The translations under genes and the position numbers were made by a program. Positions 3,956 through 58,244 of a DNA stretch of 64,000 nt are shown here, piece after piece. Every line of letters starts with the position of its first letter. Position 1 is the first letter of the stretch. Source of the stretch: Mobula hypostoma (taxonomy: Eukaryota); NCBI RefSeq assembly GCF_963921235.1, contig NC_086110.1, positions 21,018,001 to 21,082,000 on the forward strand, read 5' to 3'. Below the pieces are notes generated by a model. That model had not been told where the DNA came from. It searched no databases and saw only the letters and a program-made list of their open reading frames with translations.

Positions 3956-3987
<32 letters not shown>

Positions 3988-4938: not shown

Positions 4939-4976
4939 GGTGAGCTTATAACATTCTTTAAGAGACTGATGATTGG

Positions 4977-17810: not shown

Positions 17811-18946
17811 TTGGCTTCAAGCTTCAGTGTGCGCTGATAAAAATTGTTGAGTGTCAAAACATTTCCTAATTCTCATTGACTGCTGCGCTAACCAGAGCAT
17901 TCAGATTGAGTATTGAACATTTAGAAAACAAACATCTGCATCTTAATTGGACAACCTCAGACCTCTATTACTGGCTGCCATTTTGATAGTGTGCTCCATT
18001 GAAAATCTGAGGAGGATTATGTCATGGAGTCAGTTATAATGCTGTGTTGACCTGACCCCAACAACACATTTACTGCTGTCCAGTTGAATACGTGTTAAAG
18101 AGCCTGATTGAAGCACTCTCCATGATAATGAAAGGAATTACTTGCAGGTTGCTTGTTTTTTCTGGTGTCTTTCACTCTACAGTTCACAGAACCCTCAGCA
18201 TTGTCAAGGACACCTCCCATCCGTCCCAAAATCTCCTTGACCTCCTACCTGAATAAGAGCCTCTATCCCCAGGCTGAGATAATCAACCTCAGATCCTAAA
18301 TATGTACCAGACTGAGATTCTAGAAGCAGCTTCCGCAAACAGAAGTATATTTCAGCAACATGAGTGCCCTCTAGGTCATCGCTATCAACTAAGGATGAAC
18401 AATATTTAAATTTTTAATTGGTGAGATATTGCAGAATTGAAATTACATTTCTTTCCTCTGTTTATTTGAGTAGACATGGTTAAAGTTTCTGTTCAAAGTG
18501 CAAAGAAAGACACTTTTGTGTAATACATTTGTATTCTACAAAATGTAACAAAGTCCTCCACCTCACCCCAAATAACTGGCGGCAAATTTAAGGAATATTG
18601 TATTTGCCCTTTAACCGTATGGTAAAAATTTGGCTTTAAATTAGACAAATAATTCACCAAATTCTCTCTGTCATTAGAAATTTTGGGGCATTTGTGACAA
18701 ATTACTGGTGGATCCATTATTTCCTATCACAAAAGGAGTTTAAGAAAAATTTGGATAGGTACGTGGATGAGAGGGGTATAGAGGGCTATGGTTTAGGGAC
18801 TAGGCAGAAGACCAGTTTGGCATGGAGTAGATGGGCTGAAGGGCCTATTTCTGGGCTGTAGTGCTCTATGACTCTCTCACACTAAATTACAAGCTGAGCT
18901 GGGCTGCACTCCACTGCAAGTTTCTCCTTCTCATCAAAGTAAAACG

Positions 18947-18952
18947 TTTATT
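18947..18952 (-). terminator. PolyA signal of agrp-1
   Basis: AATAAA about 105 nt after the stop; conserved at 54112-54117 in copy 2. Confidence 0.65.
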
Positions 18953-19056
18953 TCAACTGCAAACTTACAAGTTGCACATGGAAAGCAACATAACGTAATA
19001 TAAATCTGTTTACATCTAAAACAGAGAAGTTGTCAACAGAGCGGACATGTACAAAG

Positions 19057-19245
19057 CTAGTTCTTGCCCTGGTCACAGTCACTACCGATTTTCCTGCAGT
19101 AACAAATAGCTTTAAAGAATCTGCAGTAACAAATGGTGCATGGATCACAGCAAGGCAGAGCATGGCCAAAGCAGGACTCTAGGTGTCGAACGCATCTCCT
19201 GGGCGAACGCTCTGATCTATCCATTTCGACTGCATCGAACATCAG
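19057..19245 (-). CDS. agrp: agrp-1 last coding exon (cystine knot, RFF pharmacophore)
   Basis: LMFDAVEMDRSERSPRRCVRHLESCFGHALPCCDPCTICYCRFFKAICYCRKIGSDCDQGKN*. Confidence 0.96.
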   Translation of the reverse strand: MMFDAVEMDRSERSPRRCVRHLESCFGHALPCCDPCTICYCRFFKAICYCRKIGSDCDQGKN

Positions 19246-20965
19246 CTGTAAGAGAAAGTGTTAAAGTTTACAGAATATGAAATGTCACATACCATTTTCA
19301 ATTTCTCCAACTTTGCAACGAGAATAACTAGTTGCATTTAACATTTAAACATGGACTACCAACTATATACCCTGTGGGCCAAATGGTCTCCTCGTTCATT
19401 AAGGAGATATAATGCCGTAACCCTGGGACTATGTAAACCGGCATTGCCTCTTCCATACATAAGTCAGGGAGTGATTAAACCAACCTGGGCTAGCCCGGGT
19501 AAGGAGGGTGTCTTGGCATTCAGCAGAGCTAAGCCTGTCAATAGGCAGATGTCTCCAGGTTACTCTGCTTTAAGAAACACAAGGCAACAGAAATGACCTC
19601 ATGACAGATTAGTTGAGGCTGAAAAATGCAGGTCTTGTTGGTGCTGGAGAGGACAGAACATCGTTGCAGAAACACCTAAAGTACCCCAATATCAGAGTGA
19701 CGTTGGGATTAAAAACTGTGTGAGAATATTTCCTCATTCATAATTTTCTACTATTTTAACTAAGAAACAATTTTATATTAAATAAATACAATTCATATTA
19801 AAGAATCCTAAATATTAAATAGCAGATGATTGTGTACTAATGTTGGGCCAGAACAGTGAATAACAGAATTTAATTGAACTGCTGATGTTTCAGCTTTAAT
19901 TCGTATTATATTTTACAATATTTGTTATAAAAAGTCAAATTTTAAATGTAATTAAAAGTTGATCAGTTTACTGGATATCAGTCACTCTGCCTTTGGAACG
20001 ATAAGATATAAAAACTGGATTTACCTCAGGATTGAGCATCATCTTTTCTGACATTTGATGTTCTTTTTCCAATGTGGGTTTAGTCAGTGGACCTGAATTC
20101 ACAACATTAACAGAATTCGTCAAATGTCTATCCTGTTGTTCATGCAAACATTAAATTTCAGGGCATGAAATGGTGACTTGGTAGATTGCAATAATATTGA
20201 CCTAAAATAAAGGCTGCTGCACAAACCATTCTCTACTTTTCTCAAAGGATTTGTGTTCTACCACATTAACATTCCCCAGAAGTTTGGAGAAGAACCCAGA
20301 GAATTCAAACAAACAAAACTGACAGAGTGAACTGTAAGAACAAAGAATAAGAGACAATAGAAAGGCACTCAATCTCCAACAGACTCTCAGCCATACAGAA
20401 GACTCACTCAATGATAAAGTGAGGTTTAAGAGTAAATTATTTCTAAAGGTGACAGAGCACAACAAAAGTATGTTCTGGGTGTAATGTCAGGGATATCCAA
20501 AATGAGTTCTACATTGCTAATTAGAGACTACTCTAACAAACTGCCTATGTACATTGAATGAGAGTATTGGCTTCACGGTAAACAAGAGCTGGTCACTTAC
20601 TTTTCTTCCAGTGAAATATATTTTTGTAGGTTTCCTATGCGGAACCTGTACCATGCTCTCCCACTGGAGTCATTAATCCATTCAATATTCTTGGATAAAA
20701 TGCAACAGTCAACTGCGACTGAAGCAGTAGATAATTAGTCACACTGAGAGCCTCAGACCAGGATTAATGCAGAGAGTGCAGAATTAAATGGAGATGGTTA
20801 ATACTCACCTGCAGCAGAAAATAGGGTCTTGCCCCTGCTCAGGGATGTAAAGTCGGCATTTGTGGTCACATCTCTAACGGCGTTGGAATCCAGTTCAGCT
20901 CTGATGGCACCGAAGCAGAGAATGAGCTGTAGAGCACAGCAGTAGAGCAGCATGGCATTAACCAT
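19057..20965 (-). CDS. agrp: Agouti-related protein (AgRP1-type) copy 1, 137 aa, intact
   Basis: join(20809-20965,20025-20092,19057-19245), phases 1/0, GT/AG. Signal peptide MVNAMLLYCCALQLILCFGAIRA; RSERSPRR processing site; 10-Cys knot C-x6-C-x6-CC-x2-C-x2-CYC-RFF-KAI-CYC-x6-C. Confidence 0.93.
20025..20092 (-). CDS. agrp: agrp-1 middle coding exon
   Basis: 68 nt, (G)PLTKPTLEKEHQMSEKMMLNPE; ttcag/gtaaat; phases fit both neighbouring exons. Confidence 0.75.
20809..20965 (-). CDS. agrp: agrp-1 first coding exon (signal peptide)
   Basis: cctgcag|GTATC ATG..., 157 coding nt, gtgagt donor. Confidence 0.88.
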
Positions 20966-21142
20966 GATACCTGCAGGATAATGGCACAACACTCAGCAGG
21001 GCAGCAACACCCCACCACAAGAAAAATAATCTGTTTCTATTAATACACTGGGCAATAACCCTACTTTCTCTATCATCAGCGTATAACGCATCTGCTGAAG
21101 TTGGATCTCAGAAATCACTTTGATTTAATAATCTCCATTTAC

Positions 21143-21253
21143 CTGCAAGGAACAGCTCATGAAGTGAAAGTGAACTTTTTCATTCCCCAGTCGGTGGTTG
21201 CTGAGAGCTGCTATCTGTTTTTGAACTCCTGTGTTCACACTTCCTGGTTTATA
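21143..21253 (-). promoter_or_regulatory. agrp-1 TATA box (21248-21253) and probable non-coding first exon (about 21143-21222)
   Basis: TATAAA followed about 105 nt later by the donor CAG|GTAAAT; conserved in copy 2 (TATA 56406-56411). Confidence 0.55.
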
Positions 21254-22207
21254 TCGACTGGATTTATTAACTTCAACGTCACACTGACGCCATCACTGAA
21301 ATGGGATTTGGATCCACCTCCAGCAATGTTTCTTTAAAGTCACCTAATTTAGTTTCATGTTAGTCCTGACTGAGTGAATAGCATTCTCAGTCAGAAAGCT
21401 GTACATTTGAGTCCTACTGCAGAGATCTGAGCACAAAATCCAGCGTGCCACTTTAGTACAATGCTGAAGAGCAGTGAACTATTAGAAGTCTTTTCTTTCC
21501 ATAAGGCATTAATTCCATTTCAGGTCACAGGGCATTATCTGATGTGTTCTCCCAGGCTCCTGAGTTGACCCAAGTTGTCCATGCCAGACAAGAAATTCAT
21601 CTACACTTTGGCCAGCATGCTTTCATATACATCAACCTGTCTCTTCATTTTTTTGTGTGTGGGGGAGGGGGATTTGGAGGTCGATGTGCCTGTTCCATTT
21701 TTATTCATTTGCTTTGTGCGGGGAGGAGGGATTTGGGGTTTGATGCTCGTGCTGCTTTCTTGGTTTTGTGGCTATCGGGAGAAGAACGATTTCAGAGTTG
21801 TATACTTTGATAATAAATGAACCTTTGACTCTATGTCTCTAACAAGGAAGATAATCCAGACAATTTTATAGGCTGTAGTAGTCTGGGGCCACATGCAAGC
21901 TTAAAGGCATGTAAGGTCTTTCAAGGTAGAGGTGTTAAAACAGCATTCTCAGAACAAAAATCTGATATTATCTGAGCTCAGTATGAAAAGGGAAAGTGAT
22001 CTAACAGTGGATAGCATCACATTTATTCATGTTATGCTGCAGGAGTTTAGAAGCTGTAATAGGTAGCCTAGATGGAATAGAATCCCTGGATGTAGTGTTC
22101 TTGGATTTTTGGAAGTCCTTGATAAAGTCATGCTTAAGGGCATCCCGATGGGTGGCATGACAGTGCAGCAGACGGAGCTGCCTCATACCTCCAGCGACCC
22201 GGGATGG

Positions 22208-23305
22208 AACATAGAACATAGAATAGTACAGCACAGTACAGACCCTTCGGCCCACAACATTGTGCTGACCCTCAAACCCTGACTCCCATATAAGCCCCCA
22301 CCTTAAATTCCTCCATATACCTGTCTAGTAGTCTCTTAAACTTCACTAGTGTATCTGCCTCCACCACTGACTCAGGCAGTGCATTCCACGCACCAACCAC
22401 TCTCTGAGTAAAAAACCTTCCTCTAATATCCCCCTTGAACTTCTCACCCCTTACCTTAAAGCCATGTCCTCTTGTATTGAGCAGTGGTGCCCTGGGGAAG
22501 AGGCGCTGGCTATCCACTCTATCTATTCCTCTTATTATCTTGTATACCTCTATCATGTCTCCTCTCATCCTCCTTCTCTCCAAAGAGTAAAGCCCTAGCT
22601 CCCTTAATCTCTGATCATAATCCATACTCTCTAAACCAGGCAGCATCATGGTAAGTCTCCTCTGTACCCTTTCCAATGCTTCTACATCCTTCCTGTAGTG
22701 AGGTGACCAGAACAGGACACAGTACTCCAAGTGTGGCCTAACCAGAGTTTTATAGAGCTGCATCATTACATCGCGACTCTTAAACTCTATCCCTCAATTT
22801 ATGAAAGCTAACACCCCATAAGCTTTCTTAACTACCCTATCCACCTGTGAGGCAACTTTCAGGGATCTGTGGACATGTGTCCCGAGATCCCTCTGCTCCT
22901 CCACACTACCAAGTATCCTGCCATTTATTTTGTACTCTGCCTTGGAGTTTGTCCTTCCAAAGTGTACTACCTCATATTTCTCCAGGTTGAACTCCATCTG
23001 CCACTTCTCAGCCCACTTCTGCATCCTATCAAAGTCTCTCTACAATCTTTGACAATCCTCTACACTATCCACAACATCACCAACCTTTGTGTCGTCTGCA
23101 AACTTGCCAACCCACCCTTCTACCCCCACATCCAGGTCGTTAATAAAAATCACGAAAAGTAGAGGTCCCAGAACAGATCCTTGTGGGACACCACTAGTCA
23201 CAATCCTCCAGTCTGAATGTACTCTCTCCACCACCGCCTCCTGCCTTCTGCAGGCATGCCAATTCTGAATCCACCTGGCCAAACTTCCCTGGATCCCATG
23301 CCTTC
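22208..23305 (-). mobile_element. Young 5'-truncated CR1 LINE
   Basis: SGVPQGSVLGPLLFVIFINDLD, KFADDTK and LYKTLVRPHLEYC motifs; (TTCTAT)n tail. Confidence 0.92.
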
Positions 23306-23865
23306 TTGACCCAAGTTGCCCATGCCAGACAAGAAATTCATCTACACTCATCTACACTTTGGCCCTCATGCTTTCATACACATCAATCTGTCCAAGTGCT
23401 TCAAGAATGCTGGGATTGCATCCACTTCTACCTTCTTCTCCAGAGGCCTGACCACATATTCACAACCCTGTGTCAAAAACATTCTCCTCAGATCTCCTTT
23501 AAACCTTTCCCTCCCGCTTCAATCCACGCCCTGTAGTTTTAGAGTCCCCTACCTCTGGAAAAGTGCTGTGACCGTACCCAACCTCATCCCCTCATTCTTT
23601 TATTAACCCTTCAGATTCCTGCACTCCTGTGAGGACAATCCCAGCCTATCCAATCTTTCCTTATAACTAAAGACCTTCATTCCAGGGAACATCATGATGA
23701 ACATCTCCTTCCTTCTTTCTGGAGCTGTTGCAATATCTGATAATAATGAGTATCTATTGTTGATGAGGTAGGGGGTCATTCACATTCTTGTGTTGATTTA
23801 GCAAATGCTATCAATTTTAGTGCTCCCGCAGCTGATACTTTAGTTAGTAATAGTTTTAACAGTTT

Positions 23866-24855
23866 TAGAATCAGAATCAGAATCAGAATCAGCTTTATTA
23901 TCACTGGCATGTGTCGTGAAATTTGTTAACTTAGCAACAGCAGTTCAATGCAAAATATAATATAGAAGAGAATCAATCAATCAATCAATTACAATATATA
24001 TATTGAATAGATTAAAAATAATGCAAAAACAGAAATAATATATATATTTTAAAAAGTGAGGTAGTGTTCACAGGTTCAATGTCCATTTGGGAATTGGATG
24101 GCAGAGGGGAAGAAGCTGTTCCTAACTCGCTGAGTGTGTGCCTTCAGGCTTCTGTACCTCCTCCCTGATGGTAACAGTGAGAAAAGGGCATGCCCTGGGT
24201 GCTGGAGGTTAATAATGGATGCTGCCTTTCTGAGACACCGCTCCTTGAAGATGTCCTGGGTACTTTGCAGGCTAGTACCCAAGATGAAGCCGACTAAATC
24301 TACAACCCTCTGCAGCTTCTTTCAATCCTGTGCAGTAGCCTCCCCATACCAGACAGTGATGCAGCCGGTCAGAATGCTCTCCATGGTACATTTATAGAGG
24401 TTTTTAAGTGTTTTTGTTGATATACCAAATCTATTCAAACTCCTAATGAAGTATATTTTCTGTTTTGCCTTCTTTATAGCTGCATCGATATGTTGGGACC
24501 AGGTGGGGTCCTCAGAGATCTTGACACCCAGGAACTTGAAACTGCTCACTCTCTCCACTTCTGATCCATCTATGAGGATTGGTATGTGTTCCTACGTCTT
24601 ACCCTTCCTGAAGTCCACAATCAGCTCTTTCGTCTTACTGATGTTGAGTGCCAGGTTGTTCCTGCAGCACCACTCCACTGGTTGGCATATCTCGCTCCTG
24701 TACACCCTCTCATCTCCGTCTGAGATTCTACCAACAATGGTTGTATCATCAGCAAATTCATGGATGATATTTGAACTATGCCTAGCCACACAGTCACGTG
24801 TATATAGAGAGTAGAGCAGTGGACTACGTACACACCCCTGAGGTGCACCAGTGGG
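23866..24855 (-). mobile_element. Rex1/Babar-type LINE fragment
   Basis: EFADDTTIVGRIS, LNISKTKELIVDFRK, ERVSSFKFLGV, RNSFFPSAI; (ATTCTG)n tail. Confidence 0.88.
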
Positions 24856-25644
24856 GATAGAATATCTATCTCCCAGCTTTTATAGGACGTAGATGTTCCA
24901 ATTTGCTGGGATTGATAATGAAGGAATGACAGAGATATATCAATAATTACATTGACTCCATACCACTAGGCATTTAGATGATGTTATCAGGGATAATGAA
25001 GATAGGATTCAAACACTGGGGTTCAATAGTGTAGTGATCAGAACTGCACTCATTGTTCAAGTGCAGCCTCACCAACATCTTGTACATCTGCTTGTCCTCA
25101 TCTAGGTGTAGATGGGTTGATGGAAATTTGGACAAAATGGGTGATGGTAGGATTAGTGTGGTTAGGTGATGGAAACGTGATGTGGGGTGATCAGCCAGGC
25201 TTGATGAGTTGAAGAGCCTGTGCTGGATCTCTGTAACCATATGGAAATTCACTGCCTGGGCAACACGGAGTGGAAGCAAGATGCTGGACTTATCAAAGGC
25301 AGCATATTTGGAAATCAAACACTTTTTTTCTTAAAGATCTATAACTGACTGTAGATTACAGAATCATAGTGCACCACAGCACAGAGACAGGCTCTTCGGC
25401 CCATCTAGACCATGCCGAGCTAGTAGTTTACCTCGTCCCATTGACCTGCACCTGAACCAAAGCCATTCGTATTTCCACTATTCATGTACTTACCCAAATT
25501 TCTCTTGAATGCTGTTTGTTCCACACTCAGTCCCCTCTCTGAATGAAGAAATTCCCCCTCATTTCCCCTCCACTTCCACTGGCAGCTCATTACACACTCT
25601 CACCACTCTGTGTGAAAAAGTGTCCCCTTAAATATTTCACCTTT

Positions 25645-26205
25645 CATCCCGGTAGCCACCCACTTCAACTCTGCTTCCCACTCCCATTCAGATATGTCCA
25701 TACGTGGCCTCCTCTACTGCCATGATGAGGCTAAACACAGTTTGGAGGAACAACACCTCATATACCGTCTAGGTAGTCTCCAGCCCCTTGGTATGAACAT
25801 AGAATTCTCCAACTTCCGGTAATTCCCTCCCCCTCCCCCTCCATTCCCCATCCCTACGTCACTCTGCCCCCTCCCCCAGCTGCCTATCACCTCCCTCTTG
25901 GTTCCGCCTCCTTCTACTACCCATTGTGTTTTCCCCTATTCTTTCTTCACCTTTCCTGCCTATCACCTCCCTGCCTCCCTTACCCCACCCCTTTATCTTT
26001 CCCCTTACTGGTTTTTCACCTGGAACCTACCAGCCTTCTCCTTCCCACCCTCCCCCCACCTTCTTTATAGGGCCTCTGCCCCTTCCCCCTACAGTCCTGA
26101 CAAAGGGTTCCGGCCTGAAACGTCGACCGATCTTTTCCACAGATGCTGCCTCACCTGCTGAGTTCCTCCAGCGTGTTGTGAATGTTGTTTTGACCCCAGC
26201 ATCTG
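25645..26205 (+). mobile_element. Penelope-like element 3' fragment
   Basis: LEEQHLIYRLGSLQPLGMNIEFSNFR* followed by pyrimidine-rich pseudo-LTR. Confidence 0.75.
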
Positions 26206-26430
26206 AAGATTATTTTGTGTTCTGAGGGAGAAAAGCCTGCTTGCAATTAACCTATCTATACCTTTCATAATTTTGTACATCTCTAGCAAATCCCCCCACA
26301 TTCTCCTATGCTGCTAACTTATTCACCCTTTCCCTATAACTCATATATTACTTAGATTTATTAATAACTTATATTTCCAGACAGGCCTTAAAGAACAACA
26401 CAGGTTTAGAATTCATGTTGAAGAAGTACA

Positions 26431-26436
26431 TTTATT
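26431..26436 (-). terminator. PolyA signal of ctrb-B
   Basis: AATAAA 30 nt after TAA; same in copy C (53134-53139). Confidence 0.8.
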
Positions 26437-26466
26437 TTCATTTGCATTTCACATGTTGTTTTGCAC

Positions 26467-26628
26467 TTAGTTGTCAGCAATGGTGCTATCGATCCAGTCC
26501 CTGAGCTCCGTCACGCGGGCATAGACAGCAGGAGTGCTGGTGGAGCAATAGCCACTGCCCCAGGAAACGATGCCAACCAAGTTCCATACGTTGTGCTTCT
26601 GACAGACAAGTGGGCCGCCAGAGTCATC
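26467..26628 (-). CDS. ctrb: ctrb-B exon 7 (Ser195; G193D; Ala226)
   Basis: [53 protein letters not shown]. Confidence 0.93.
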
Positions 26629-29600
26629 CTGTAAACAAGTCACAGCCTCAGACTTGGTCAAATTTCCTTTTTGCAACTTAAAAGAGGTTGAAGTACTTTG
26701 AAAAGGTTTCATACCATGCCAGATGAGGCACCAGCTGCCCCAGCGCAGATCATGATATCGGTGACACTGCTACCCCAGTAGTTCCGGCAGTTCACGTTGG
26801 AGAGGAGAGGAAGAGCAGCTTGCTGAAGTTTGTTAGGTCGTTTAGCAGCTGTGGAAACGTTAGATGATACTTCAATCAATTTTGCTTTTTTTTTTAAGGG
26901 TCATACTCCAATGAAAGTAAAAGGGTATATTTTCAGCCATTAGAAACCTTTTATAGGCCTATTGATTGACTATACCTCTTTCCGGCCTGTCTCCCTTTTC
27001 TCAATTCTTGTGCTTCCACTGTATCTATTGCCAGGATAAGGCTTTTCTTTCCAGGACAGGGAGGAGGTGAACAGCGAGGTGTAGCATTTCTGTTGCATGC
27101 AGGGATATGTGAGAGAGACTAGTGGGGAGGGCTAAATGGACAAAGGAATCATGGAGAGAGCAATCCCTATGAAACGTGGATAGTGGGGGAGGGGGGGTAA
27201 AGATGTGTTTGGTGCTAGGATCCCACTGAAGATGTGGAGAGTGGAGGGAAGGTAACGATGTGTTGGCGGTAGGATCCCTTTGCAGACGGCGGAAGTTGTG
27301 GAGGATGATGCGTTGGGTGCAGTGGCTCATGAGGTGACAGGTCAGGACAAGAGGAACTCTATCCTTGTTCAGGTGGCAGGAAGATGGGGTGGACGTGGAT
27401 GTCCGGGAAATGGAGGAGATGCAGGTGAGGAAGAGAAACCCCGTTCTTTGTCCTTATCCCTGGGACAGATGCGACAGAGGTGAAGGAACTGAGCAAAGGG
27501 AATGGCGTTTTTACAGGAGATCGGGTGGAAATAGTATCGTCAAGATGGCCGTGGGAATCAGCAGGTTTATAAAAGATGTCAGTAGATAGTTGGTCTCCAG
27601 AGATGGAGACAGAGAGATCGAGAAAGGGGAGGGAGGTGTCAGAAACGGACCAAGTGAATTTAAAGGTAGGGTGGAAGTTGAAGGCAAAGTTTATGAAATT
27701 GATGAGCTCAGCATGTAGGTGTGAAGCAGCATCTATGCAGTTGTCAATGTAGTGCAGAAAGAGTTGGGGAGTTTGACCAGAGAAGGCTTGGAACATGGAC
27801 TGCTCTACGCAGCCAGTGAAAAGGTAGGCGTAGCTGGGGCCCATACAGGTACCCACGGCTACCCCTAGGGTTTGGAAAAAGTGAGAGGGACCAAAGGAGA
27901 AATTGTTAAGGGTGGGAACCAGTTCTGCTAGACAGGAAGGTATTGGTGGAGGGGAACTGGTTGGGTCCTTTGGAGGGAAAAATACAGAGAACTTTAAGGC
28001 CTTCTTGATGGGGGATAGAAAGTTATAGGGACTGGACATCCATGGTGAAAATGAGGCGGTCGGGGCAGGGAATTGAACATTATTGAGGAGATCGCGAGCA
28101 TGAGAAGTGTGGCTGTGTTGATCTGGGAAGGGACTGAACCAAGGGGAATATAATGGAGTTGAGGTATGTGGACATGAGTTCAGTGGGGCAGGAGTTGGCA
28201 GAGACAATGGTCTTACTCGTACAGTCACGTTTGTGGATCTTGGGTAGAAGGTAGAAACAAGCATTGCGGGTTAAGGAAACTATAAGTTTGGTGGCAGTGA
28301 ATGGGAGTTCACAAAGTTGATGAGATCAGTGATGGTGACACTGACGGTCCAGAATATGGTCCTTTTCAAGGAGGTGTCTTGAGAGTTTCCGACTGGCATC
28401 AGCAAGGTCGAGGTCAGTCCGCCACACAGCAATAGCTCCCCCTTTGACTGCAGGTTTGCTGGTAAGGTTGTGATTGGTGTGGAGAGAGTGGAGGGCAGTG
28501 CATTCAGAGGGAGTAAGACTGGAGGAGGAGGAGAGGAGTGCTGAAATTGAGGCAGTTGATATTTCGTTGGGAATTAGAGATGAAAAGATCTGGAGCTGGC
28601 AGAGAACCAGAGCGGGATGTCCAAGAGAAGGTGTAGGATTGGATATGGGAGGAGGGGTCATTGGTGCAGTGGACTGAGGGCCCGACAATGGAGGGGGCAA
28701 AACTCGTCCTACATTTGGGAAGGTGACAGTGAGGGAGCACTTAGGGACCAGTGACTATATTTCTAATAGTTTTTAAAGGGTTATGGAAAGGGACAGAACT
28801 GGTCCACAGGTTCAAGTTCTAAGCTGGGGCAAGGATAATTTTAACAGTATGAGACAGGAGGTTGCAACGATTGTTTGGGGTAGGTAGTTTGTTGACACAG
28901 AGCCCACAGGTAAGTGGGAGTCTTTTAAAAGTGATCTAGTAAGATCTCAAAGCCTACATGTTCCTGTTGGAGCGTAGGGCAAGGCAGGCAGGAGTACGGA
29001 ACCTTGGACAATGAGGGATATTGAGGCCCTGACCCTGGAGAAAACGAGGCATAGGTTAGGTACAAGCAGCTGGGATCAAGCAATTCTCTGGAGGGATATA
29101 GGGTTAAACAGGGGGAATGAGGGATTTTTGACAGAGAATATGAATAAAATTCTACACAGATTGTATGTATATTAACATAGAAACAGAATAAGGCCCCTCA
29201 AAGATCACAAGAACATATCTTTGTGTGGAGCCACAGGAGGCAGGCATGGTCCTTAATGAATATCTCTCCTCTGTTATTTTTTAACCACAGAGAGTTGTAT
29301 GAATGGCAGGGCACTGGGGAGTGGTGTAGAACAGAGTGAAAGTCACAGGTAGGTGAAGAGGTGAAGAAGGCTTTTGACACACTGGCCTTTGTCTCTCAGG
29401 CCAATGAGTAGAGAAGTTGGGAAGTCATGTCATTTTGTGGTTGTATTGGACGCTGGTAATACTGCTCTTGGAATATTGTATTCATTTTTGGTCGCCTTGC
29501 TGCAGTAAAGGTGTTGTTAGACTGGAAGAGGTGTAAAAAAGATTTATAAGGATGCTGCCAGGATTTGAATAAATGAATTATAGGGAGAGGTTGAAGAGGC

Positions 29601-42754: not shown

Positions 42755-42953
42755 TGCTGGGCACGTGGACTCAAGGTCGCTAGTTCGAATCTCAACTGTG
42801 GCAGTGTGTTTGTGCCCTTGAGCAAGACACGTAATCACACATTGCTCTAGTCTGTGCGAGCAGTGGCGCCCCACACAGACTTCCAATCTGAGCCTTGTAA
42901 GGCATGAAAATGCCCGACACAGGCCTCTCATGGTCTGAGTCGACGTTCCCCCC
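42755..42953 (+). mobile_element. tRNA-derived SINE inserted in the ctrb-C 5'UTR
   Basis: 199 bp, B box AGTTCGAATCT, TSD TAAGCT (42749-42754 / 42954-42959); absent in A and B. Confidence 0.85.
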
Positions 42954-43191
42954 TAAGCTCACCATGGTGTTTCTGTGGCTTCTCTCCTGCTCCGCTTTCT
43001 TTGGAGTCACTTATGGTAATATCACTTGAAATTAGAATTCTACTTTTAACCATTGGAACGGAGGGTGCCGTGTTGAATGCAATTGGCAACATCTACATAG
43101 AGCAACTGCTTCTCTCCACCCAGGTGCAGGCTGCGGATCTCCACCCATCACCCCGGTTCTGTCAGGCTACAGTCGAATTGTTAATGGTGAA

Positions 43192-46128: not shown

Positions 46129-46208
46129 ACTGATTCTGGTTGGCATTTCTGCGGCGGTTCCTTGATCAATGAAAACTGGGTTGTCACCGCTGCACATTGT
46201 GAAGTGAG
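46129..46208 (+). pseudogene. ctrb: ctrb-C exon 3
   Basis: [26 protein letters not shown]. Confidence 0.9.
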
Positions 46209-46532
46209 GTAAGCCTTAACGCCTACAAAGAGAGAAAGAAATGTGCTGGTGAATCATTCTCTAATTCCTGAGGGATGATGCAGCTTTAACTGATATTTTT
46301 GTTCAAAGTTATATATGAGGCAAAGAAAAGTTGCTCTTGTGGGCATGAACATTGACCTAATGAGGGAAGATCCTTGCATGAATAGTTTGGGAAATCGTTG
46401 ACTGGAAAGTACAATTTTCCCTCAACCCCCAGCCACCCCCCCTCCCCCCACCACTGATGAATCTTGGAGTTGCTGGTATCTTGCAACAAGCAAACTCTGT
46501 CACTGCTTTTGTTTTTCTTTTGTCACATACAG

Positions 46533-46614
46533 TACGAACGACTTTGCTATTGTTGGTGCCTATGACAAAAGCTCAAAAGCTGAAGCCAGCCAGAAATCCA
46601 TGTCCATTGCTAAG
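46533..46614 (+). pseudogene. ctrb: ctrb-C exon 4
   Basis: [27 protein letters not shown]. Confidence 0.85.
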
Positions 46615-47962
46615 GTACGTACCTCCCTGTAAAACTAGGAATTTGTTTGAATTCAGGTCAAATTTGGGCTACAGTACAGTTAGGATCCAAAATGATGTGC
46701 AGAGATGGATGCCATACAGACAGGACACAGGATCTTAGTAAGGGGTGTCCATTACCGAAAGTGGTTTCAATCTCCAATATGAATATGCCTCACCATGATA
46801 AACTTCATAGCACCAAGAATAGAATCACGAGATATTGATAACAAGCAAAAGCAAGAATTATTTCAGGTGCTGCTGAAGATGATAAAAGATTGTTACATAT
46901 CACTTCCCTCAGGCGTTGGGGCCCCAGTTTCAATCAGATTAATTTTCCTCTGCACTAGCCCCAATACCCTGACACATGGGCCTTCCAGCAATAAATGTTA
47001 CTTGCAGTGTAGTAAGTGAAAAGACAAACTCAGTCATAAGGACAAACATGAAGCAAACAGATTAGACATTTCATGTTGGAATGCATGGCATAGAGTGGCC
47101 ATTGATCCTGGCGTCCTGTTCACTAAGGGTTGCCTGTAAAGCCCATCAGGGAATTTGATAATGTGTGGGTTGGTATAAGGTCCAGTCTTTGGGCTGTATG
47201 CCAGAATGCCAGTGTCTATATGACTGCACACACGGTAATGTTTGAACCTCTCTGTCCTGATAGCTGGACTGGCACCCTTTTCTCTACATGATTTGCCCTT
47301 TGTCTCCTTGTCCTAGATAAGGTTGGTGTATCAACAGATTACCAACGATTGCTTAATTCTTTGCAAAGCTGAACCATTTTGAGTCAATGATTTGGGATTG
47401 ATTGCTGACACTTCTGAATGATGTTTGCATCTTCTTTTTGTCTTCTGACCATCGTTGTGTTCTGGTGTCGAGTGGTTTGCAAGAAGTTCATTAGCATTTG
47501 AGACAGATGTAGATGCAATGAGAAATTGTTGTCTATTGTGCTGAGGTGATTGCTGTTTTGCTCATATAGAGTTTAGAAATGAGCACATGAACTGCTGGCT
47601 TGATCGAAGTGTCTAGGCAACTGAAAAAAACTAATTATCCCAAAAAAGTTAATCAAATTCGGAAAGGAAAAACTGAAGATGTTTTATGCAAGACGACAGC
47701 ACCAGTGTAATGGTAAACCACAGAATGCAGCCACTTATTTCCACTTCCAGCTTGTAAGTCTATCTATTTTTCTTTAAATTGCTGACTTTGTTTTCTAATG
47801 AAGGGCTTTTGAATTCTATTTTGAAGAAGCAATTCCCCATTCATGAGTGCAGCTCCATTGACATGAAATCCAGGAGAGTCTGAAGTTATCGGTCTCAAGC
47901 AAGTGCCAACTGTAAAAGATGAGTACTAGGCACAGCCGTCATCCATGTTCTCTCTGTTACAG

Positions 47963-48143
47963 GTCATTACACACCCCAAGTGGAACCCATCCACCATTAA
48001 TTATGATGTTTCTGTGGTGAAGCTTGCAACCCCCGTTCAGTTCAACAGTCATGTGTCGCCAGTCTGTCTCGCCGCTGTATCTGATAACTACCCAGAGGGC
48101 ATGATGTGTGTCACAACGGGATGGGGAAGGACTCGTGCTTATC
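47963..48143 (+). pseudogene. ctrb: ctrb-C exon 5
   Basis: [21 protein letters not shown]...GWGRTRAY. Confidence 0.9.
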
Positions 48144-48369
48144 GTATGTCAGTTCAAAACTTTACAAATTACAGTGTTGCAGTTCCGAGCTCTGTGCCTT
48201 TATACCCTTACCCTGACAGGGAGCAGTGGATAGATTCCCAAGATGATTGGCAATCTGGAAGGTTATGCTATGAATAATACTTCATGGCTGCAACAAGTTT
48301 CTCTGGTCAAGGAACAGGATAATTCTGTTCATCAGAGGGATATTGTGGGCTTCTACAACTGATCCAGTG

Positions 48370-50750
48370 ATAGGGTGTTCACATTGTCATATAGATTGGA
48401 AATGGGTCTTTCTGCCCAATTGGTCCAAGCAGACTAAGGTACCCCATCCAATCTAGTGCCATTTGCTAATGTTTGGCCCATAACATTCTAAACCTTTCCA
48501 ATCCACAGACTCATAGCCTTCTAATTCTTTCAAAACCATAGACCCATAATCTAACTCTTTCCAATCCATGGACCCATAACCTTCTAAACCTTTCTGATCC
48601 ATGGACCCATATCCTTCTATTCCTTTCCAATCCATGGTCCCATAACCTTCAAAACCTCTTTAATGCATGCATCATAACTTTCTAATCCTTTCCAATTCAG
48701 GTACCTGTCCAACTGTCTTTTAAAAGTTGTCATTTTATTTGCCTTACCACTTCTGGTAGCTGATTCTGCATAGATACCACCCTTTGTGGAACAAAAAAGG
48801 TTGTCCCTCAAGTTTCTTTGAGATCTTTCCACCCTCACCTTAAACCTACGCCCTCTTGGTCTTGATGTCCCAACTCTGGGAAAAAAGACAGAATACATTC
48901 ACCCTATCTTTGCCACTCATGATTTTATACCTCTCTATAAGATCATCTTCAGTCCTCTATGCTCTAAGGAATAAAGTACTAGCCTCTTCAACCTCTCCCT
49001 ATAATTCAGTTATTCAAATCCTGGCAACATCGTTATAAATCCTTTTCACACTTCTTCCAGTCTAACAACACCTTTACTACAGCAAGGCGACCAAAAATGA
49101 ATACAATATTCCAAAAGCAGTCTTACCAGCGTCCAGTACAACCACAACATGACATGACTTCCCAACTTCTCTACTCATTGGCCTGAGAGATAAAGGCCAG
49201 TACAAACAAAGCCTTCTTCACCTCCTCGTCTACCTGTGACTTTCACTCTGTTCTACACCACTCCCCAGTGCCCTGCCATTCACTGTGAAAATCCTACCTG
49301 GATTTGACTTTCCAAAATATAGCACTTCATATTTATCTGAATTCAATCTAATTTTCCACTTTTTGCCCCATTTACCCAGTTGATCAAGATCTCCTGTAAT
49401 TTTTGATAACCCTTTTCCATTGTCCACTATACCATCTGCTTTAATGTTGAATGCAGACTTATTAACCATGCCTTGCAGATTATTATCCAAATCATTGATA
49501 AACAATGGGCTGAGCACAGCCCCTGAGGCACTCCATTTGTCATGTGTTTCTAGTCCAATAAGCAACCTTCTACCATCACCCTTTGCTTTCTACCATCAAG
49601 ACAATCATGTATCCAATTAGCCAGCTCTCTCTGCATTCTATGTAATCTCACCTTCTGGAGCAGCCTACCATGTGGAACCTTATCAAAGGCCTCACTGAAT
49701 TCCATATAAACTAGATCTACCACCCTCCCCTCATAGACTTTCTATGACACATACTCAATCAAGTTCGTAAGACATGATCTCCCATGCACAAAACCATACT
49801 GACCTAATCAATCCCTGACTTTCCAGATTGACATACATTTTGTCTCTCAGAATCCTTTCCAGTAACTGACAGATGTTAGACCTACTGCTTTATAGTTCCC
49901 AGGTTTTTCTTTGCCCCCTTCTTAAATAAAGGCACAACATTTGCTACTCTCTGTCTACTGTCTCCTCAGTTGTGGCTAACGATGATGCAAATATCTCAGA
50001 CAAGGCTCCCACAATTTCTTCTCTAGTTTCCCATAGTATTCTTTGATAAACTTGGTCAAACCTGTTGATTTGTCTACTTTCCTACCTTTTAAGTCATACA
50101 GCACCCTTCTACTGTAATGCAGACTATCCCTAAGACAACTCCATTTAAATTTCCTAGTTGTTAAGTTTTCATGCAACTCTCAATGGGAAAAAAAAAACAG
50201 AGGAGAGATATTCATTAAGGACTTTGCCTGCCTCCTGTGGCTCCACACAAAGATATGTCTCTGTGATCTTTGAGGGGCCTTATTCTGTTTCTACGTTAAT
50301 ATACTTATACAATCTCTGTAGAATTTTGTTAATATTCTCTGTCAAAGTTCCCTCACGCCCCCTGTTTGCCCTATATCCCTCCAGAGATTTACTTGATCCC
50401 AGCTGCTTGTACCTAACCCATGCCTCCTTTTCTCCAGGGTCAGGGCCTCAATATCCCTCATTATCCAAGGTTCCATACTCCTGCCTGCCTAGCCCTACAC
50501 TCTAACAGGAACATGCAGGTTTTGAGCTCTCACTAGATCACATTTAAAAGACTCCCACTTACCTGTGGGCTCTGTGCCAATAAACTACCTACTCCAAACA
50601 ATCGTTGCATCCTCCTGTCTCATACTGTTAAAATTATTCTTGCCCCAGCTTAGAACTTGAACCTGTGGACCAGTTCTGTCCCTTTCCATAACCCTTTAAT
50701 AACTAATAGAACTATAGTCACTGGTCCCTAATTGCTCCCTCAGTGTCTCC
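48370..50750 (-). mobile_element. Degenerate CR1 LINE in ctrb-C intron 5
   Basis: GAVLSPLFINDLD RT remnant. Confidence 0.8.
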
Positions 50751-52721
50751 TTCCTCAGTCTCGGTCGAGTTTTGCCCTCTCCATTGTCGGGCCCTCAGTA
50801 TACTGTCCAAGGTAACTTCCTTGAAATCACCTTAAGCCCTTAACTGTATGTATGTTCCTCAGTATTTTAGGAAAGTTTAAATCTCCTTCAAGAATACTCC
50901 TAGTATTCTTGCATCTCTCGACAATCTCCCTGCATGTTTATTCCTCTACTTCCCGTTCAAAATTGGGAGGCCTATAGTACAATCCCAACATTATTTCTCG
51001 GCTCCACCCACAAAGCCTCATTGGACATGAACCACAAACCTGATGCAGTCTGTCCATTCCAGAGTCATTTGTCGGGTACTCGACTTGAACATCAGCAAAG
51101 GCAAATTTTCAAAGAAACAGCAACTTAGAGGTATATGGTCATCAATCAATTTGTGCTGACATTGGAAAACATAGTTTTCAACAGATTGTGGAAAGAATTC
51201 CTGAGTTAGCTTCTTGCTTTATTTGTTTTAACGTAATATTATTGCATCATAGGATAACTTCACTCACCTCAACTCTGAACTGATACCACAACCTACACAC
51301 TCACTTTCATGGACACTGAAATCATATATTCTGTATTTATTTATTTGTTTATTTATTTTTGCACAGGTTGTTTTCCTATGAACAGTGGCTATTTGTATTT
51401 GTTAACGTAGCTTTTTCATAAATTCTATTGTACTTGTAAGTGCCCGCAAGAAAAATGAATCTCAATTTGGCACACGATGACATAGACATACACACTTTCA
51501 TGATAAATTTACTGACACGCTGACTTTACTTTTAATCAGACTGAATCAGTTATATGGAGGAGAGGAGCAAATCCTAGGGGCCTAGATAGAGTGCCGTGGA
51601 CAGGATGTTTCCTAGAGTGGAGGAGTCTAAGAGCAGAGGGCTCAGGCTTACAATAGAAGAATGCTCCTTTAGAACAGGGATGAGGAGGAAATTCTCTCCA
51701 ACCCCAGTCCTCTCAGGATCCCCCGTCACTTTTTGGGTCCTAAGAGCCACCATCTTCTTCCCACCTAACCTTCCCAGAACACCCTAACCCTCCACCAACT
51801 CCCCAACTCTTTCTGCACTACATTGACAACTGCATAGATGCTGCTTCACACCTTCATGCTGAGCTCATCAATTTCATAAACTTTGCCTTCAACTTCCACC
51901 CTACCCTTAAATTCACTTGGTCCATTTCTGACACCTCCCTCCCCTTTCTCGATCTCTCTGTCTCCATCTCTGGAGACCAACTATCTACTGACAACTTTTA
52001 TAAACCTGCTGATTCCTACGGTTATCTTGACGATACTATTTCCACACGATATCCTGTAAAAACACCATTCCCTTTGCTCAGTTCCTTCACCTCTGTCGAG
52101 TCTGTCCTAGGGATAAGGACAAAGAACGGGGTTTCTCTTCCTCACCTGCATCTCCTCCATTTCCCGGACATCCACGTCCACCCCATCTTCCTGCCACCTG
52201 AACAAGGATAGAGTTCCTCTTGTCCTGACCTGTCACCTCATGAGCCACTGCACCCAACGCATCATCCTCCACAACTTCCGCCGTCTGCAAAGGGATCCAA
52301 CCGCCAACACATCGTTACCTTCCCTCCACTCTCCACATCTTCAGTGGGATCCTAGCACCAAACACATCTTTACCCCCCTCCCCCACTATCCATGTTACAT
52401 AGGGATTGCTCCCTCCATGATTCCTTTGTCCATTCAGCCCTCCCCACTAGTCTCTCTCACATATCCCTGCATGCAACAGAAATGCTACACCTCGCTGTTC
52501 ACCTCCTCCCTGTCCTGGAAAGAAAAGCCTTATCCTGGCAATAGATACAGTGGAAGCACAAGAATTGAGAAAAGGGAGACAGGCCGGAAAGAGGTATAGT
52601 CAATCAGTAGGTTTATAAAAGGTTTCTAATGGCTGAAAATATACCCTTTTACTTTCATTGGAATATGACCCTTAAAAAAATAAAGCAAAACTGATTGAAG
52701 TATCATCTAACATTTCCACAG

Positions 52722-52855
52722 CTGCTAAACGACCTAACAAACTTCAGCAAGCTGCTCTTCCTCTCCTCTCCAACGTGAACTGCAGGAACTACTGGGGTAG
52801 CAGTGTCACCGATGTCATGATCTGCGCTGGTGCTGCTGGTGCCTCGTCTTGCATG
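52722..52855 (+). pseudogene. ctrb: ctrb-C exon 6
   Basis: [44 protein letters not shown]. Confidence 0.9.
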
Positions 52856-52941
52856 GTATGAAACCTTTTCAAAGTACTTCAACCTCTTTTAAGTTGCAAA
52901 AAGGCAATGAGACCAAGTCTGAGGCTGTGACTTGTTTACAG

Positions 52942-53103
52942 GGTGACTCTGGCGGCCCACTTGTCTGTCAGAAGCACAACGTCTGGAACTTGGTTGGCAT
53001 CGTTTCCTGGGGCAGTGGCTATTGCTCCACCAGCACTCCTGGTGTCTATGCCCGCGTGACGGAGCTCAGGGACTGGATCGATAGCACCATTGCTGACAAC
53101 TAA
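52942..53103 (+). pseudogene. ctrb: ctrb-C exon 7 (Gly226)
   Basis: [53 protein letters not shown]. Confidence 0.9.
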
Positions 53104-53441
53104 GTGCAAAACAACATACGAAATGCAAATGAAAATAAATGTACTTCTTCAACATGAATTCTAAACCTGTGCTGTTCTTTAAGGCCTGTCTGGAAATATA
53201 AGTTATTAATAAATCTAAGTAATATATGAGTTATAGGGAAAGGGTGAATAAGTTAGCAGCATAGGAGAATGTGGGGGGATTTGCTGGAGATGTACAAAAT
53301 TATGAAAGGTATAGATAGGTTAAATGCAAGCAGGTTTTTCTCCCTCAGAACACAAAATAATCTTCAGATGCTGGGGTCAAAACAACACTCACAACACGCT
53401 GGAGGAACTCAGCAGGTTGAAAACCGGTAATGCCAAACCCA

Positions 53442-56400
53442 TGAGATAATCAATCTCAGGTCCTAAATTTGTACCGGACTGAGATTCTAGAAGCAGCTTC
53501 CGCAAACAGAAGTATATTTCAGCAACATGAGTGCCCTCTAGGTCATCGCTATCAACTAAGGATGAACAATATTTAAATTTTTAATTGGTGATATATTGCA
53601 GAATTGAAATTACATTTCTTTCCTGTTTATGTAAGTAGACATGGTTAAAGTTTCTGTTCAAAGTGCAAAGAAAGACACTCCTGTGTAATACATTTGTATT
53701 CTACAAAATGTAACAGAGTCCTCCACCTCCCCCAACATAACTGGTAGCAAATTTAAGGAATTTTGTAATTGCACTTTAACCGTATGGTAAAAATTGAGCT
53801 TTAAATTAGACAAATAAATCACCAAATTCTCTCTGTCATTAGAAATTTTGGGGCATTTGTGACAAATTACTGGTAGATCCATTATTTCCTATCACAAGAG
53901 GGGTTTAAGAAAAGTTTGGACAGGTACATGAATAAGAGGGGTATGGAGGGCTATGGTTTAGGGACCTGGCAGAAGACCAGTTTGGTATGGAGTAGATGGG
54001 CTGAAGGGCCTATTTCTGGGCTGTAGTGCTCTATGACTCTCTCACACTAAATTAAGAGCTGAGCTGGGCTGCACTCCACTGCAAGTTTCTCCTTCTCATC
54101 AAAGTAAAACGTTTATTTCAACTGCAAACTTACAAGTTGCACATGGAAAGCAACATAACATAATATAAAGCTGTTTACGTCTAAAACAGAGAAGTTGTCA
54201 AGAGGACAAGTACAAAGCTAGTTCTTGACCAGGTCACAGTCACTACCGATTTTCCTGCAGTAACAAATAGCAGTAAAGAATCTGCAGTAACAAATGGCGC
54301 ATAAATCACAGCAAGGCAGAGCATGGCCAAAGCAGGACTCTAGGTGTCGAACGCATCTCCTGGGCGAACGCTCTGATCTATCCGTCTCGACTGCATCAAA
54401 CATCAGCTGTAAGAGAAAATGTTAAAGTTTACAGAATATGAAATGTCACATACCATTTTCAATTTCTCCAATTTTGCAACAAGAACAACGAGTCGCATTT
54501 AACATTTAAACATGGACTACCGACTATATACCCTGTGGGCCAAATGGTCTCCTCGTTCTTTAAGGAGATATAATGCCGTAAACCTGGAACTATGTAAACC
54601 AGCATTGCCTCTTCCTTATATAAGTCAGGGAGCGGTTAAACCAACCTGGGCTAGCCCGGGTAAGGAGGGTGTCTTGGCATTCAGCAGAGCTAAGCCTGTC
54701 AATAGGCAGATGTCTCCAGGTTACTCTGCTTTAAGAAACACAAGGCAACAGAAATGTCCTCATAACAGATTAGTTGAGGCTGAAAAATGCAGGTCTTGTT
54801 GGTGCTGGAGAGGACAGAACATCGTTGCAGAAACACCTAAGGTACCCCAATATCAGAGTGACGTTGGGATTAAAAATTGTGTGAGAATATTTCCTCATTC
54901 ATAATTTTCTTTTATTTTAACTAAGAAACAATTTTATATTAAATAAATACAATTCATATTAAAGAATCCTAAATATTAAATAGCAGATGATTGTGTAATG
55001 TTGGGCCAGAACAGTGAATAACAGAATTTAATTGAACTGCTGATGTTTCAGCTTTAAATCGTATTATATTTTACAATATCTGTTATAAAAAGTCAAATTT
55101 GAAAAGTAATTAAAACTTAATCAGTTTACCAGATATCAGTCACTCTGCCTTTGGAACGATAATATATAAAAACTGGATTTACCTCAGGATTGAGCATAAT
55201 CTTTTCTGCCATTTGATGTTCTTTTTCCAATGTGGGTTTAGTCAGTGGACTTGAATTCACAACATTAACAGAATTCGTCAAATGTCTATCCTGTTGTTCA
55301 TGCAAACATTAAATGTCAGTGCATGAAATGGTGACTTGGTAGATGGCAATAATAATGACCTAAAATAAAGGCTGCCGCACAAACCATTCTCTACCTTTCT
55401 CAATGGATTTGTGCTCTACCACATTAACATTCCCCAGAAGTCTGGAGAAGAACCAAAAGAATTCAAACAAACAAAACTGACAGAGTGAACTGTAAGAACA
55501 AAGAATAAGAGACAATAGAAAGGCACTCAATCTCCAACAGACTCTCAACCATACAGGAGACTCACTCAATGATAAAGTGAGGTTTAAGAGTAAATTATTT
55601 CTAAAGGTGACAGAGCACAACAAAAGTATGTTCTGGGTGTAATGTCAGGGATATCCAAAATGAGTTCTACATTGCTAATTAGAGACTACTCTAACAAACT
55701 GCCTATGTACATTGAATGAGAGTATTGGCTTCACTGTAAACAAGAGCTGATCACTTATTTTTCTTCCAGTGAAATATATTTTTGTAGGTTTCCTATGCGG
55801 AACCTGTACCATGCTCTCCCAGTAGAGTCATAAATCCATTCAATACTCTTGGACAAAATGCAACAGTCAACTGCGACTGAAGCAGTAGATAATTAGTCAC
55901 GCTGAGAGCCAAAGACCAGGATTAATGCAGAGAGTGCAGAATTAAATGGAGATGGTTAATACTCACCTGCAGCAGAAAATAGGGTCTTGCCCCTGCTCAG
56001 GGATGTAAAGTCGGCATTTGTGGTCACATCTCTAACGGCGTTGGAATCCAGTTCAGCTCTGATGGCACCGAAGCAGAGAATGAGCTGTAGAGCACAGCAG
56101 TAGAGCAGCATGGCATTAACCATGATACCTGCAGGATAATGGCACAACACTCAGCAGGGTAGCAACACCCCACCACAAGAAAAATAATCTGTTTCTATTA
56201 ATACACTGGGCAACAACCCTACTTTCTCTATCATCAGCGTATAACGCATCTGCTGAAGTTGGATCTCAGAAATCACTTTGATTTAATAATCTCCATTTAC
56301 CTGCAAGGAACAGCTCATGAAGTGAAAGTGAACTTTTTCTTTCCCCAGTCGGTGGTTGCTGAGAGCTGCTATCTGTTTTTGAACTCCTGTGTTCACACTT

Positions 56401-56521
56401 CCTGGTTTATATCGACTGGATTTACTAACTTCAACGTCACTCTGACACCATCACTGAAATGGGATTTGGATCCACCTTTAGCAATGTTTCTTTAAAGTCA
56501 CCTAATTTAGTTTCATGTTAG
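53442..56521 (+). repeat. Direct duplicate of 18275-21363 (whole agrp transcription unit)
   Basis: Collinear high identity; both junctions carry about 24-bp fillers unrelated to the immediate flanks. Confidence 0.93.
54218..56123 (-). pseudogene. agrp: Agouti-related protein copy 2: reading frames open but middle-exon acceptor AG>AA; probable pseudogene
   Basis: Exons 55967-56123, 55183-55250, 54218-54406; knot CVRHLESCFGHALPCCDLCAICYCRFFTAICYCRKIGSDC; base 55251 destroys the CAG acceptor. Confidence 0.75.
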
Positions 56522-57980: not shown

Positions 57981-58244
57981 CCTCCTCATCCCTGTTCTAA
58001 AGGAGCATTCTTCTATTGTAAGACTGAGCCCTCTGCTCTTAGACTCCTCCACTCTAGGAAACATCCTGTCCACGGCACTCCATCTAGGCCCCTTGGATTT
58101 GCTCCTCTCCTCCATATAACTGATTCAGTCTGATTAAAAGTAAAGTCAAAATGCCAGTAAATTTATCATGAAAGTGCGTACATATATGTTATGGTGTGCC
58201 GAATTGAGGTTCATTTTGATTGCAGGCATTTACAAGAACAATAG

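Follow-up and report, generated by a model that had tools for sequence, protein, structure and literature searches.

The agouti-related protein AgRP is a central appetite signal that acts as an antagonist of melanocortin receptors through a C-terminal cystine knot bearing an RFF motif; whole-genome duplication aside, virtually every vertebrate covered by the present survey has a single copy of its gene. In the 64,000-nucleotide stretch of the genome of the devil ray Mobula hypostoma analysed here (NC_086110.1, positions 21,018,001 to 21,082,000, hereafter the window), this gene is found twice within a cluster of chymotrypsinogen genes (ctrb), and the finding is a lineage-specific duplication of an already known gene. 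The first copy (copy 1, agrp1) is intact, occupies the ancestral locus and is taken as the working AgRP gene, encoding a secreted precursor, while the second (copy 2, agrp2) is read, with a probability of roughly three in four, as an unprocessed, decaying pseudogene, because it has a truncated upstream region and lacks one splice acceptor, its coding sequence appears to evolve nearly neutrally, it is without a RefSeq protein model and its protease neighbours appear dead. The expression and function of copy 2 are presumably lost, and in annotation it is best handled as a pseudogene.

Two AgRP copies and the lesions of the second

Comparison of the window with itself by megablast disclosed a complex segmental duplication composed of direct and inverted blocks at 90-98% identity, among which two blocks carrying AgRP (Table 1) match in direct orientation with 96.05% identity over 3090 columns. 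When aligned globally, these blocks differ by 112 mismatches in 3079 aligned positions and by 5 small indels, at a constant offset of 35,158 bp, so that the two near-identical units about 35 kb apart announced in a preliminary description of this DNA were indeed recovered. Each block holds a single Agouti knot exon on the minus strand, which is recognised by PF05039 well above the cut-off of 27 bits, together with two upstream coding exons located by tblastn with ray and shark AgRPs; a third agouti exon is absent from the window.

In copy 1 every splice border is AG/GT and the product has 137 amino acids, identical to the RefSeq protein XP_062923496.1 (P0101), which is named "agouti-related protein-like" in M. 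hypostoma. From ATG to stop the gene of this RefSeq entry measures 1909 nt, exactly the length found in the window, and it is preceded on its own strand by a trypsin-family gene of 286 aa that ends at a distance of 5.5 kb. The knot of copy 1 carries two lineage-specific changes, A112T and N120K, the latter directly after RFF.

Copy 2 differs from copy 1 in 10 codons, 8 of them nonsynonymous (S67A, M70I, M83T, P110L, T112A, K120T, Q134L and G135V) and 2 synonymous, none of which falls in exon A. A lesion is located at the acceptor of intron 1, where the G that is kept in copy 1 and in the sawfish Pristis has been replaced by A, a change polarised as copy-2-derived. Use of the nearest AG, at +1, would shift the frame and run into a stop after 2 codons, skipping of exon B would likewise shift the frame and end in an early stop, and no in-frame AG is present within 45 nt upstream of exon B. 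Upstream of the coding region, the homology of copy 2 to the outgroups and to copy 1 ends at about -398, within a conserved upstream element, so that a non-canonical acceptor and a truncated upstream region set copy 2 apart from an intact gene. Moreover, the 90% cluster that contains P0101 and the related M. hypostoma protein P0204 holds no RefSeq protein for copy 2. Runs guessed to be RNA were considered as a source of AgRP transcripts and rejected, as they cover a constant share of about 15% whether a stretch of 6 kb or one of 2.2 kb is compared, which resembles thin genomic coverage and not an AgRP transcript.

The pattern of substitution was examined with Pristis as the polarising outgroup. 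A general acceleration of copy 2 was rejected by the relative-rate test, with 37 changes in the block derived in copy 1 and 37 in copy 2. The coding changes comprise 3 derived in copy 1 and 9 in copy 2 (8 of them nonsynonymous), against 34 and 28 non-coding changes, respectively, and the Nei-Gojobori (NG86) comparison of the two copies gave an omega of 0.85 (Nd 9.0, Sd 3.0). Contigs of three other organisms, which agree with the Pristis polarity, assign to the knot exon of copy 2 six derived changes, all nonsynonymous, and to that of copy 1 three, namely N120K, A112T and one synonymous change.

It has to be considered in this context that copy 2 might be a second functional AgRP diverging under positive selection, which would rely on a cryptic acceptor or a non-canonical one, with the 400 proximal nt that remain upstream as its driver. 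Several observations weigh against decay and lend themselves to such a proposal. The 137-codon frame of copy 2 is open, with the signal peptide, the ten cysteines and RFF intact, although an open frame has an estimated chance of about 1 in 3 under neutrality and is thus weak evidence either way. A purine-rich cryptic AG situated 30 nt inside exon B would preserve the frame, though it looks like a poor acceptor. The replacement P110L need not inactivate the product, since Leu is also found at the proline of CCDPC in the AgRP of Narcine and Ala in some teleosts. In addition, coding changes are in excess in copy 2 as a non-significant trend only (Fisher p = 0.11), all six derived knot-exon changes are nonsynonymous, copy 2 still has part of the conserved upstream element, and Mobula tolerates extra AgRP genes, three of which (P0204, P0201 and P0203) are intact. 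Positive selection, however, would call for an omega above 1 rather than 0.85, and the ratio of 6:0 does not depart significantly from the 3:1 expected under neutrality (p ~0.18); the canonical acceptor is lost with no in-frame substitute nearby, and copy 2, with its shortened upstream element and unrepresented among RefSeq protein models, is set between two apparently dead protease copies. A second functional AgRP at this position is accordingly considered unlikely, and the pseudogene reading is retained. As a separate observation, the Narcine bancroftii AgRP XP_069755543.1 (P0004) reads CCDLC, the same Pro-to-Leu replacement as in copy 2, in a model of 237 aa whose long N-terminal extension is probably spurious.

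Exon A stands out from the remainder of the block, because it lies within a tract of complete identity between the copies (Table 1). Purifying selection as the cause of this identity was rejected, as the tract is just 85% identical to Pristis; gene conversion between the copies is preferred over constraint because the identity of the two copies is complete while that to the outgroup is so limited, and it probably accounts for the tract.

The divergence of the blocks also bears on whether copy 2 exists in the animal at all. The read evidence consists of Logan contigs, whose depth is not a copy number and which end at the high-copy edges of the blocks. In the contigs of run X1, 25 of the 27 listed variant letters are those of copy 1, with a switch to copy-2 letters in places and both letters at several sites. 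Two-form sites in this run have roughly complementary depths (10.9 of 23; 13.6 of 25), which could mimic alleles and would fit uncollapsed haplotypes or a false duplication; such mixed letters are, however, the expected behaviour of de Bruijn assembly in the presence of two paralogues. Run X1 contains both letter sets, and a second organism likewise shows some of the letters derived in copy 2. A divergence of 3.6% is far above the expectation between alleles in an elasmobranch, and here it is accompanied by the five indels and by an even split of the derived changes. The flanks of the blocks are entirely different, with ancestral sequence around copy 1 and the 3' end of ctrb-C and intron 5 of ctrb-D around copy 2; the window contains four protease copies, one of them inverted, and no runs of N; and the independent assembly of Mobula birostris presents a comparable cluster, in which two AgRP genes accompany trypsin genes paired head-to-head. 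An assembly artefact is therefore regarded as highly improbable, and the duplication appears to be real and lineage-specific.

With regard to the family assignment, both copies display the arrangement C-x6-C-x6-CC-x2-C-x2-C-x-C-x6-C-x-C-x6-C with RFF retained. The spacing C-x6-C-x6-CC defines the A1 class, which includes ASIP1 and AgRP1, while the A2 class is characterised by C-x6-C-x5-CC (Vastermark 2012, PMC3397983). The spacing thus excludes AgRP2/ASIP2 but cannot alone mean AgRP, because ASIP1 shares it. Comparison with the PDB gave 56 bits for human AgRP (1HYK) vs 39 bits for ASIP, and a HMMER search with the knot exon retrieved 94 relatives, the closest of which are cartilaginous-fish AgRPs and the 60 best of which are all named AgRP. 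In a knot-domain tree, whose 57 columns leave the fine branching weak, both copies are placed in the elasmobranch AgRP clade (support 97/90), apart from the x5-spaced A2 and the ASIP-like sequences, with branch lengths of 0.095 for copy 2 and 0.017 for copy 1. The preliminary description, which had assigned both copies to AgRP1 and not to the ancient agrp2/asip2 paralogue and had proposed a phylogeny with AgRP1, ASIP and AgRP2, is upheld by spacing, score and tree alike; its treatment of the two copies as equals holds for their presence only, with copy 2 being 5'-truncated, deprived of its acceptor and apparently near-neutral. The top match of the HMMER search was a predicted protein of 5033 aa (P0001) with 43 matched Agouti-domain stretches, which may be either an odd gene prediction over a tandem array or a real poly-agouti protein.

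Ancestral locus and the chymotrypsinogen cluster

Outgroup DNA around AgRP was available from Pristis pectinata (sawfish) and Amblyraja radiata (skate), and in both the homology runs through the block of copy 1 and past its two edges. Upstream of copy 1, Pristis is colinear past the block edge to 21560 and then again in the spacer at 23867-23954 and 24466-24853; downstream the colinearity starts at 18163 and reaches 7814, in the direction of ctrb-A. At copy 2 the outgroup homology stops abruptly at both edges (Table 1). Copy 1 is therefore taken as the ancestral locus and copy 2 as the derived duplicate. In Amblyraja the exons of ctrb-A find their match in a trypsin-family gene that follows AgRP on its strand at a distance of 3 kb, and AgRP followed by a same-strand chymotrypsinogen appears to be the ancestral batoid order. 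The conserved element upstream of copy 1 is 77-91% identical to Pristis and 58-77% to Amblyraja, where the background is about 80% and lower, and may represent a putative promoter or non-coding 5' exon.

In the skate sequence CM021382.1 (L002:21131-21289), AgRP exon A was noticed to recur with an open frame, about 50% identical to exon A of the window, 3.2 kb downstream of AgRP at the 5' end of a 303-aa trypsin-family gene model. Part of AgRP seems to have been duplicated here independently, in the very interval between AgRP and chymotrypsinogen, and the 303-aa protease model may use this exon copy as its first exon.

The genes flanking both AgRP copies are chymotrypsinogens, as judged from 81 bits to bovine chymotrypsinogen A/B vs at most 57 bits to other serine proteases and from exons that match PF00089; the motifs of catalytic His57 and Ser195, TAAHC and GDSGGP, are present in ctrb-C. 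Each AgRP copy had been described as lying directly downstream of a same-strand ctrb gene, and this arrangement is found in both cases: the ATG of agrp1 is 5.5 kb past the last exon of ctrb-B, while agrp2 abuts the truncated ctrb-D and is in addition tail-to-tail with the plus-strand ctrb-C. The same-strand upstream gene is, however, not the ancestral neighbour, which is ctrb-A, downstream of agrp1. The gene ctrb-D is a direct copy of ctrb-B from B-coordinate 27562 upward and is truncated after exon 5. Only 25 bp separate it from the agrp2 block, whereas the equivalent points in the ctrb-B/agrp1 unit are 6.2 kb apart, so that the segment ctrb-D to agrp2 can be described as a direct repeat of the segment ctrb-B to agrp1 minus 6.2 kb. 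With exons 6-7 of ctrb-D and the intergenic spacer deleted, intron 5 therefore abuts agrp2 at -398. Both neighbours of agrp2 appear to be dead, ctrb-C through a transposon in exon 2 and ctrb-D through a stop codon and the 3' deletion.

Table 1. Positions of AgRP, chymotrypsinogen and related features, counted from the first nucleotide of the window.
Feature	Position	Strand	Remarks
ctrb-A	1..5575 (5' part, rest off window)	-	exons 2-3 intact; ancestral downstream neighbour of AgRP
Duplicated block, copy 1	18275..21363	-	whole AgRP coding region with ~400 nt upstream and ~780 nt downstream; self-megablast
agrp copy 1 exon C	19057..19245	-	cystine knot with RFF and stop codon; Pfam Agouti 54.1 bits; PDB 1HYK AgRP E 2.7e-14
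agrp copy 1 exon B	20025..20092	-	canonical AG acceptor and GT donor
Mismatch-free tract	20755..21001 (= 55913-56159)	-	247 nt over exon A; 0 differences vs mean 3.6%
agrp copy 1 exon A	20809..20965	-	signal peptide and N-terminal pro-region; ATG 20965, GT donor, ends in phase 1; tblastn, splice-site check
Conserved non-coding element	21201..21505	-	-236 to -540 from copy 1 ATG; copy 2 keeps only the part to ~-398
agrp1/ctrb-B spacer	21364..26152	-	ancestral AgRP upstream region and tail of a long interspersed nuclear element (LINE) at 22272-22766 (LINE-like open reading frame); absent at copy 2; no self-match
ctrb-B	26153..37092	-	upstream of agrp1; open reading frame complete; SSCM to SSGM, GDSGGP to DDSGGP (Cys191, Gly193 lost)
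ctrb-C	42119..53417	+	inverted, head-to-head with ctrb-B; exon 2 interrupted by Tc1/Sleeping-Beauty-type transposase; 3' end abuts agrp2 block
Duplicated block, copy 2	53442..56521	-	self-megablast; outgroup homology ends at 56521 and 53419
agrp copy 2 exon C (knot)	54218..54406	-	ten Cys and RFF retained; M83T, P110L (CCDPC to CCDLC), N120T, Q134L, G135V; Pfam 53.0 bits
agrp copy 2 exon B	55183..55250	-	S67A, M70I; preceded by AA instead of AG
Copy 2 intron-1 acceptor lesion	55251	-	G mutated to A (AG to AA)
agrp copy 2 exon A	55967..56123	-	nucleotide-identical to copy 1
ctrb-D	56546..64000 (partial)	-	direct copy of ctrb-B; in-frame stop in exon 3; exons 6-7 and intergenic spacer deleted

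The junction of ctrb-D and agrp2 raises a further possibility, namely that the sole role of copy 2 is to supply the 3' portion of a chimeric ctrb-D::agrp2 read-through transcript, with ctrb exon 5 spliced 5 nt upstream of the agrp2 ATG. The deletion has set both genes on one strand 0.4 kb apart, the exon 5 donor (C/GTATGT, phase 1) and the acceptor of agrp exon A (cag/GTATCATG) fit in phase, and the M. birostris model P0203 uses the exon A acceptor with a phase-1 upstream exon. Nevertheless, no full chimeric open reading frame is present, because exon 3 of ctrb-D is interrupted by an in-frame stop and the intron-1 acceptor of agrp2 is dead, which renders this proposal very unlikely.

Taken as a pseudogene, copy 2 is best accommodated by a scenario that would start from the ancestral batoid state of AgRP followed by a chymotrypsinogen on one strand. 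In the Mobula lineage the protease gene would have been amplified into direct and inverted copies, and one duplication would have carried a ctrb gene together with AgRP, thereby giving the direct repeat of ctrb-D to agrp2. A later 6.2-kb loss would have taken exons 6-7 of ctrb-D along with the AgRP upstream region. Copy 2 has lost its intron-1 acceptor as well, its coding sequence appears to drift at about the neutral rate, and gene conversion with copy 1 has probably homogenised part of it, over exon A. The earlier suggestion that AgRP hitch-hiked on the amplification of the protease locus thereby gains support from the larger direct repeat and from the AgRP-chymotrypsinogen adjacency, which is probably ancestral in batoids.

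Several further features of the cluster were recorded. The region 26470-26900 (-) of ctrb-B corresponds to a RefSeq 286-aa Trypsin-domain protein with SSGM, in which Cys191 is lost, and DDSGGP, in which Gly193 of the oxyanion hole is lost, and instead of a functional chymotrypsinogen ctrb-B may encode a pseudo-protease with impaired catalysis. In the exon 2 frame of ctrb-C (43036-43626, +), IVNGE runs straight into the helix-turn-helix region of a Tc1/Sleeping-Beauty-type transposase (PF25787, PF01498). The genes ctrb-B and ctrb-C form inverted-repeat arms (35424-37092 = 42754-41084) of about 97% identity centred near 39 kb, and the region upstream of ctrb-A (6936-10796) is an inverted match to the ctrb-B/ctrb-C interval; the instability of the cluster may stem from the palindrome. 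The edges of the copy 2 block (53285-53481 and 56437-57421) are extremely high-copy repeats, with summed contig word depths that reach about 450,000 and some 50,000 in all four organisms compared; this points to transposable elements as markers or mediators of the breakpoints of copy 2.

AgRP copies in Mobula and other cartilaginous fishes

The expectation that AgRP1 is normally single-copy agrees with the proteins surveyed, among which some 17 other cartilaginous fishes have one gene each: Hypanus, Hemitrygon, Pristis, Amblyraja, Narcine, about ten sharks and Callorhinchus are all represented by one AgRP, with multiple entries being isoforms. M. hypostoma possesses P0101 (copy 1 of the window), P0204 (XP_062923492.1) and copy 2 of the window, while M. 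birostris possesses P0201 and P0203. The gene of P0204 is intact, spans 1913 nt and is situated on the same chromosome as copy 1; its protein differs from that of copy 1 by M71L and K120N, and the derived T112 is common to both. Since neither window copy encodes P0204, a third intact AgRP of M. hypostoma exists outside the window, where further copies had been anticipated. A 406-aa protein of S. torazame (P0216) was considered as a ctrb-AgRP fusion that would show the adjacency of the two families and was rejected, having no trypsin domain.

The two genes of M. birostris are likewise intact. The P0203 model covers 39.7 kb across a head-to-head trypsin gene pair in a layout like that of ctrb-C, ctrb-B and agrp1 in the window; the peptide of its 5' exon was not found in the window with up to 3 mismatches allowed. 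Paralogues within a species share residues, T112 in M. hypostoma and I30 in M. birostris, which fits either independent duplications or concerted evolution. Contigs of a second organism contain both letters at the copy-2-derived sites 54486 and 55105 and only the ancestral form of the knot exon, which is no more than suggestive of an orthologue of copy 2 in that organism. In the literature collection searched, no paper dealt with AgRP duplication in rays, and the Mobula duplicates stand in RefSeq as "agouti-related protein-like".

These data raise the tentative proposal, toward which we are somewhat more sceptical than convinced, that Mobula has undergone a true expansion of AgRP1 independent of whole-genome duplication, with at least two intact, expressed paralogues per species, gene conversion within species and one N120K change, which would result in a modified melanocortin-antagonist repertoire with copy 2 as a decaying by-product. 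If true, the expansion would provide the devil and manta rays of this genus, which are giant filter-feeders, with an altered set of melanocortin antagonists. The candidates for physiological novelty are in any case the intact extra Mobula paralogues outside the window and not copy 2. The local expansion of AgRP in Mobula offers a natural example of a neuropeptide gene copied by way of an unstable digestive-protease cluster, and copy 2 would illustrate how most duplicates die, through regulatory loss at a breakpoint, decay of a splice site and neutral drift.

Comparison with known systems

In comparison with vertebrate AgRP1 (human 1HYK and XP_062923496.1), copy 1 likewise has three coding exons, a signal peptide and the A1 ten-cysteine knot with RFF, while copy 2 differs by seven derived residue changes, the dead acceptor and the truncated upstream region. 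The teleost A2 paralogues and ASIP1 have the Agouti domain PF05039 and the inhibitor-cystine-knot fold in common with the window copies, and most of them retain RFF; unlike the window copies, the A2 proteins exhibit C-x6-C-x5-CC and form separate clades in the tree, and ASIP scores lower and is without the CYCRFF..CYCRK signature. The closest parallel to copy 2 is found in the unprocessed pseudogenes of tandem digestive-protease clusters, with which it shares a segmental origin with introns kept, regulatory loss at the breakpoint, a splice lesion and an omega near 1, as well as degenerate neighbouring duplicates and signs of gene conversion with the parent. It differs from them in that the passenger is a neuropeptide gene and its frame is not yet broken.

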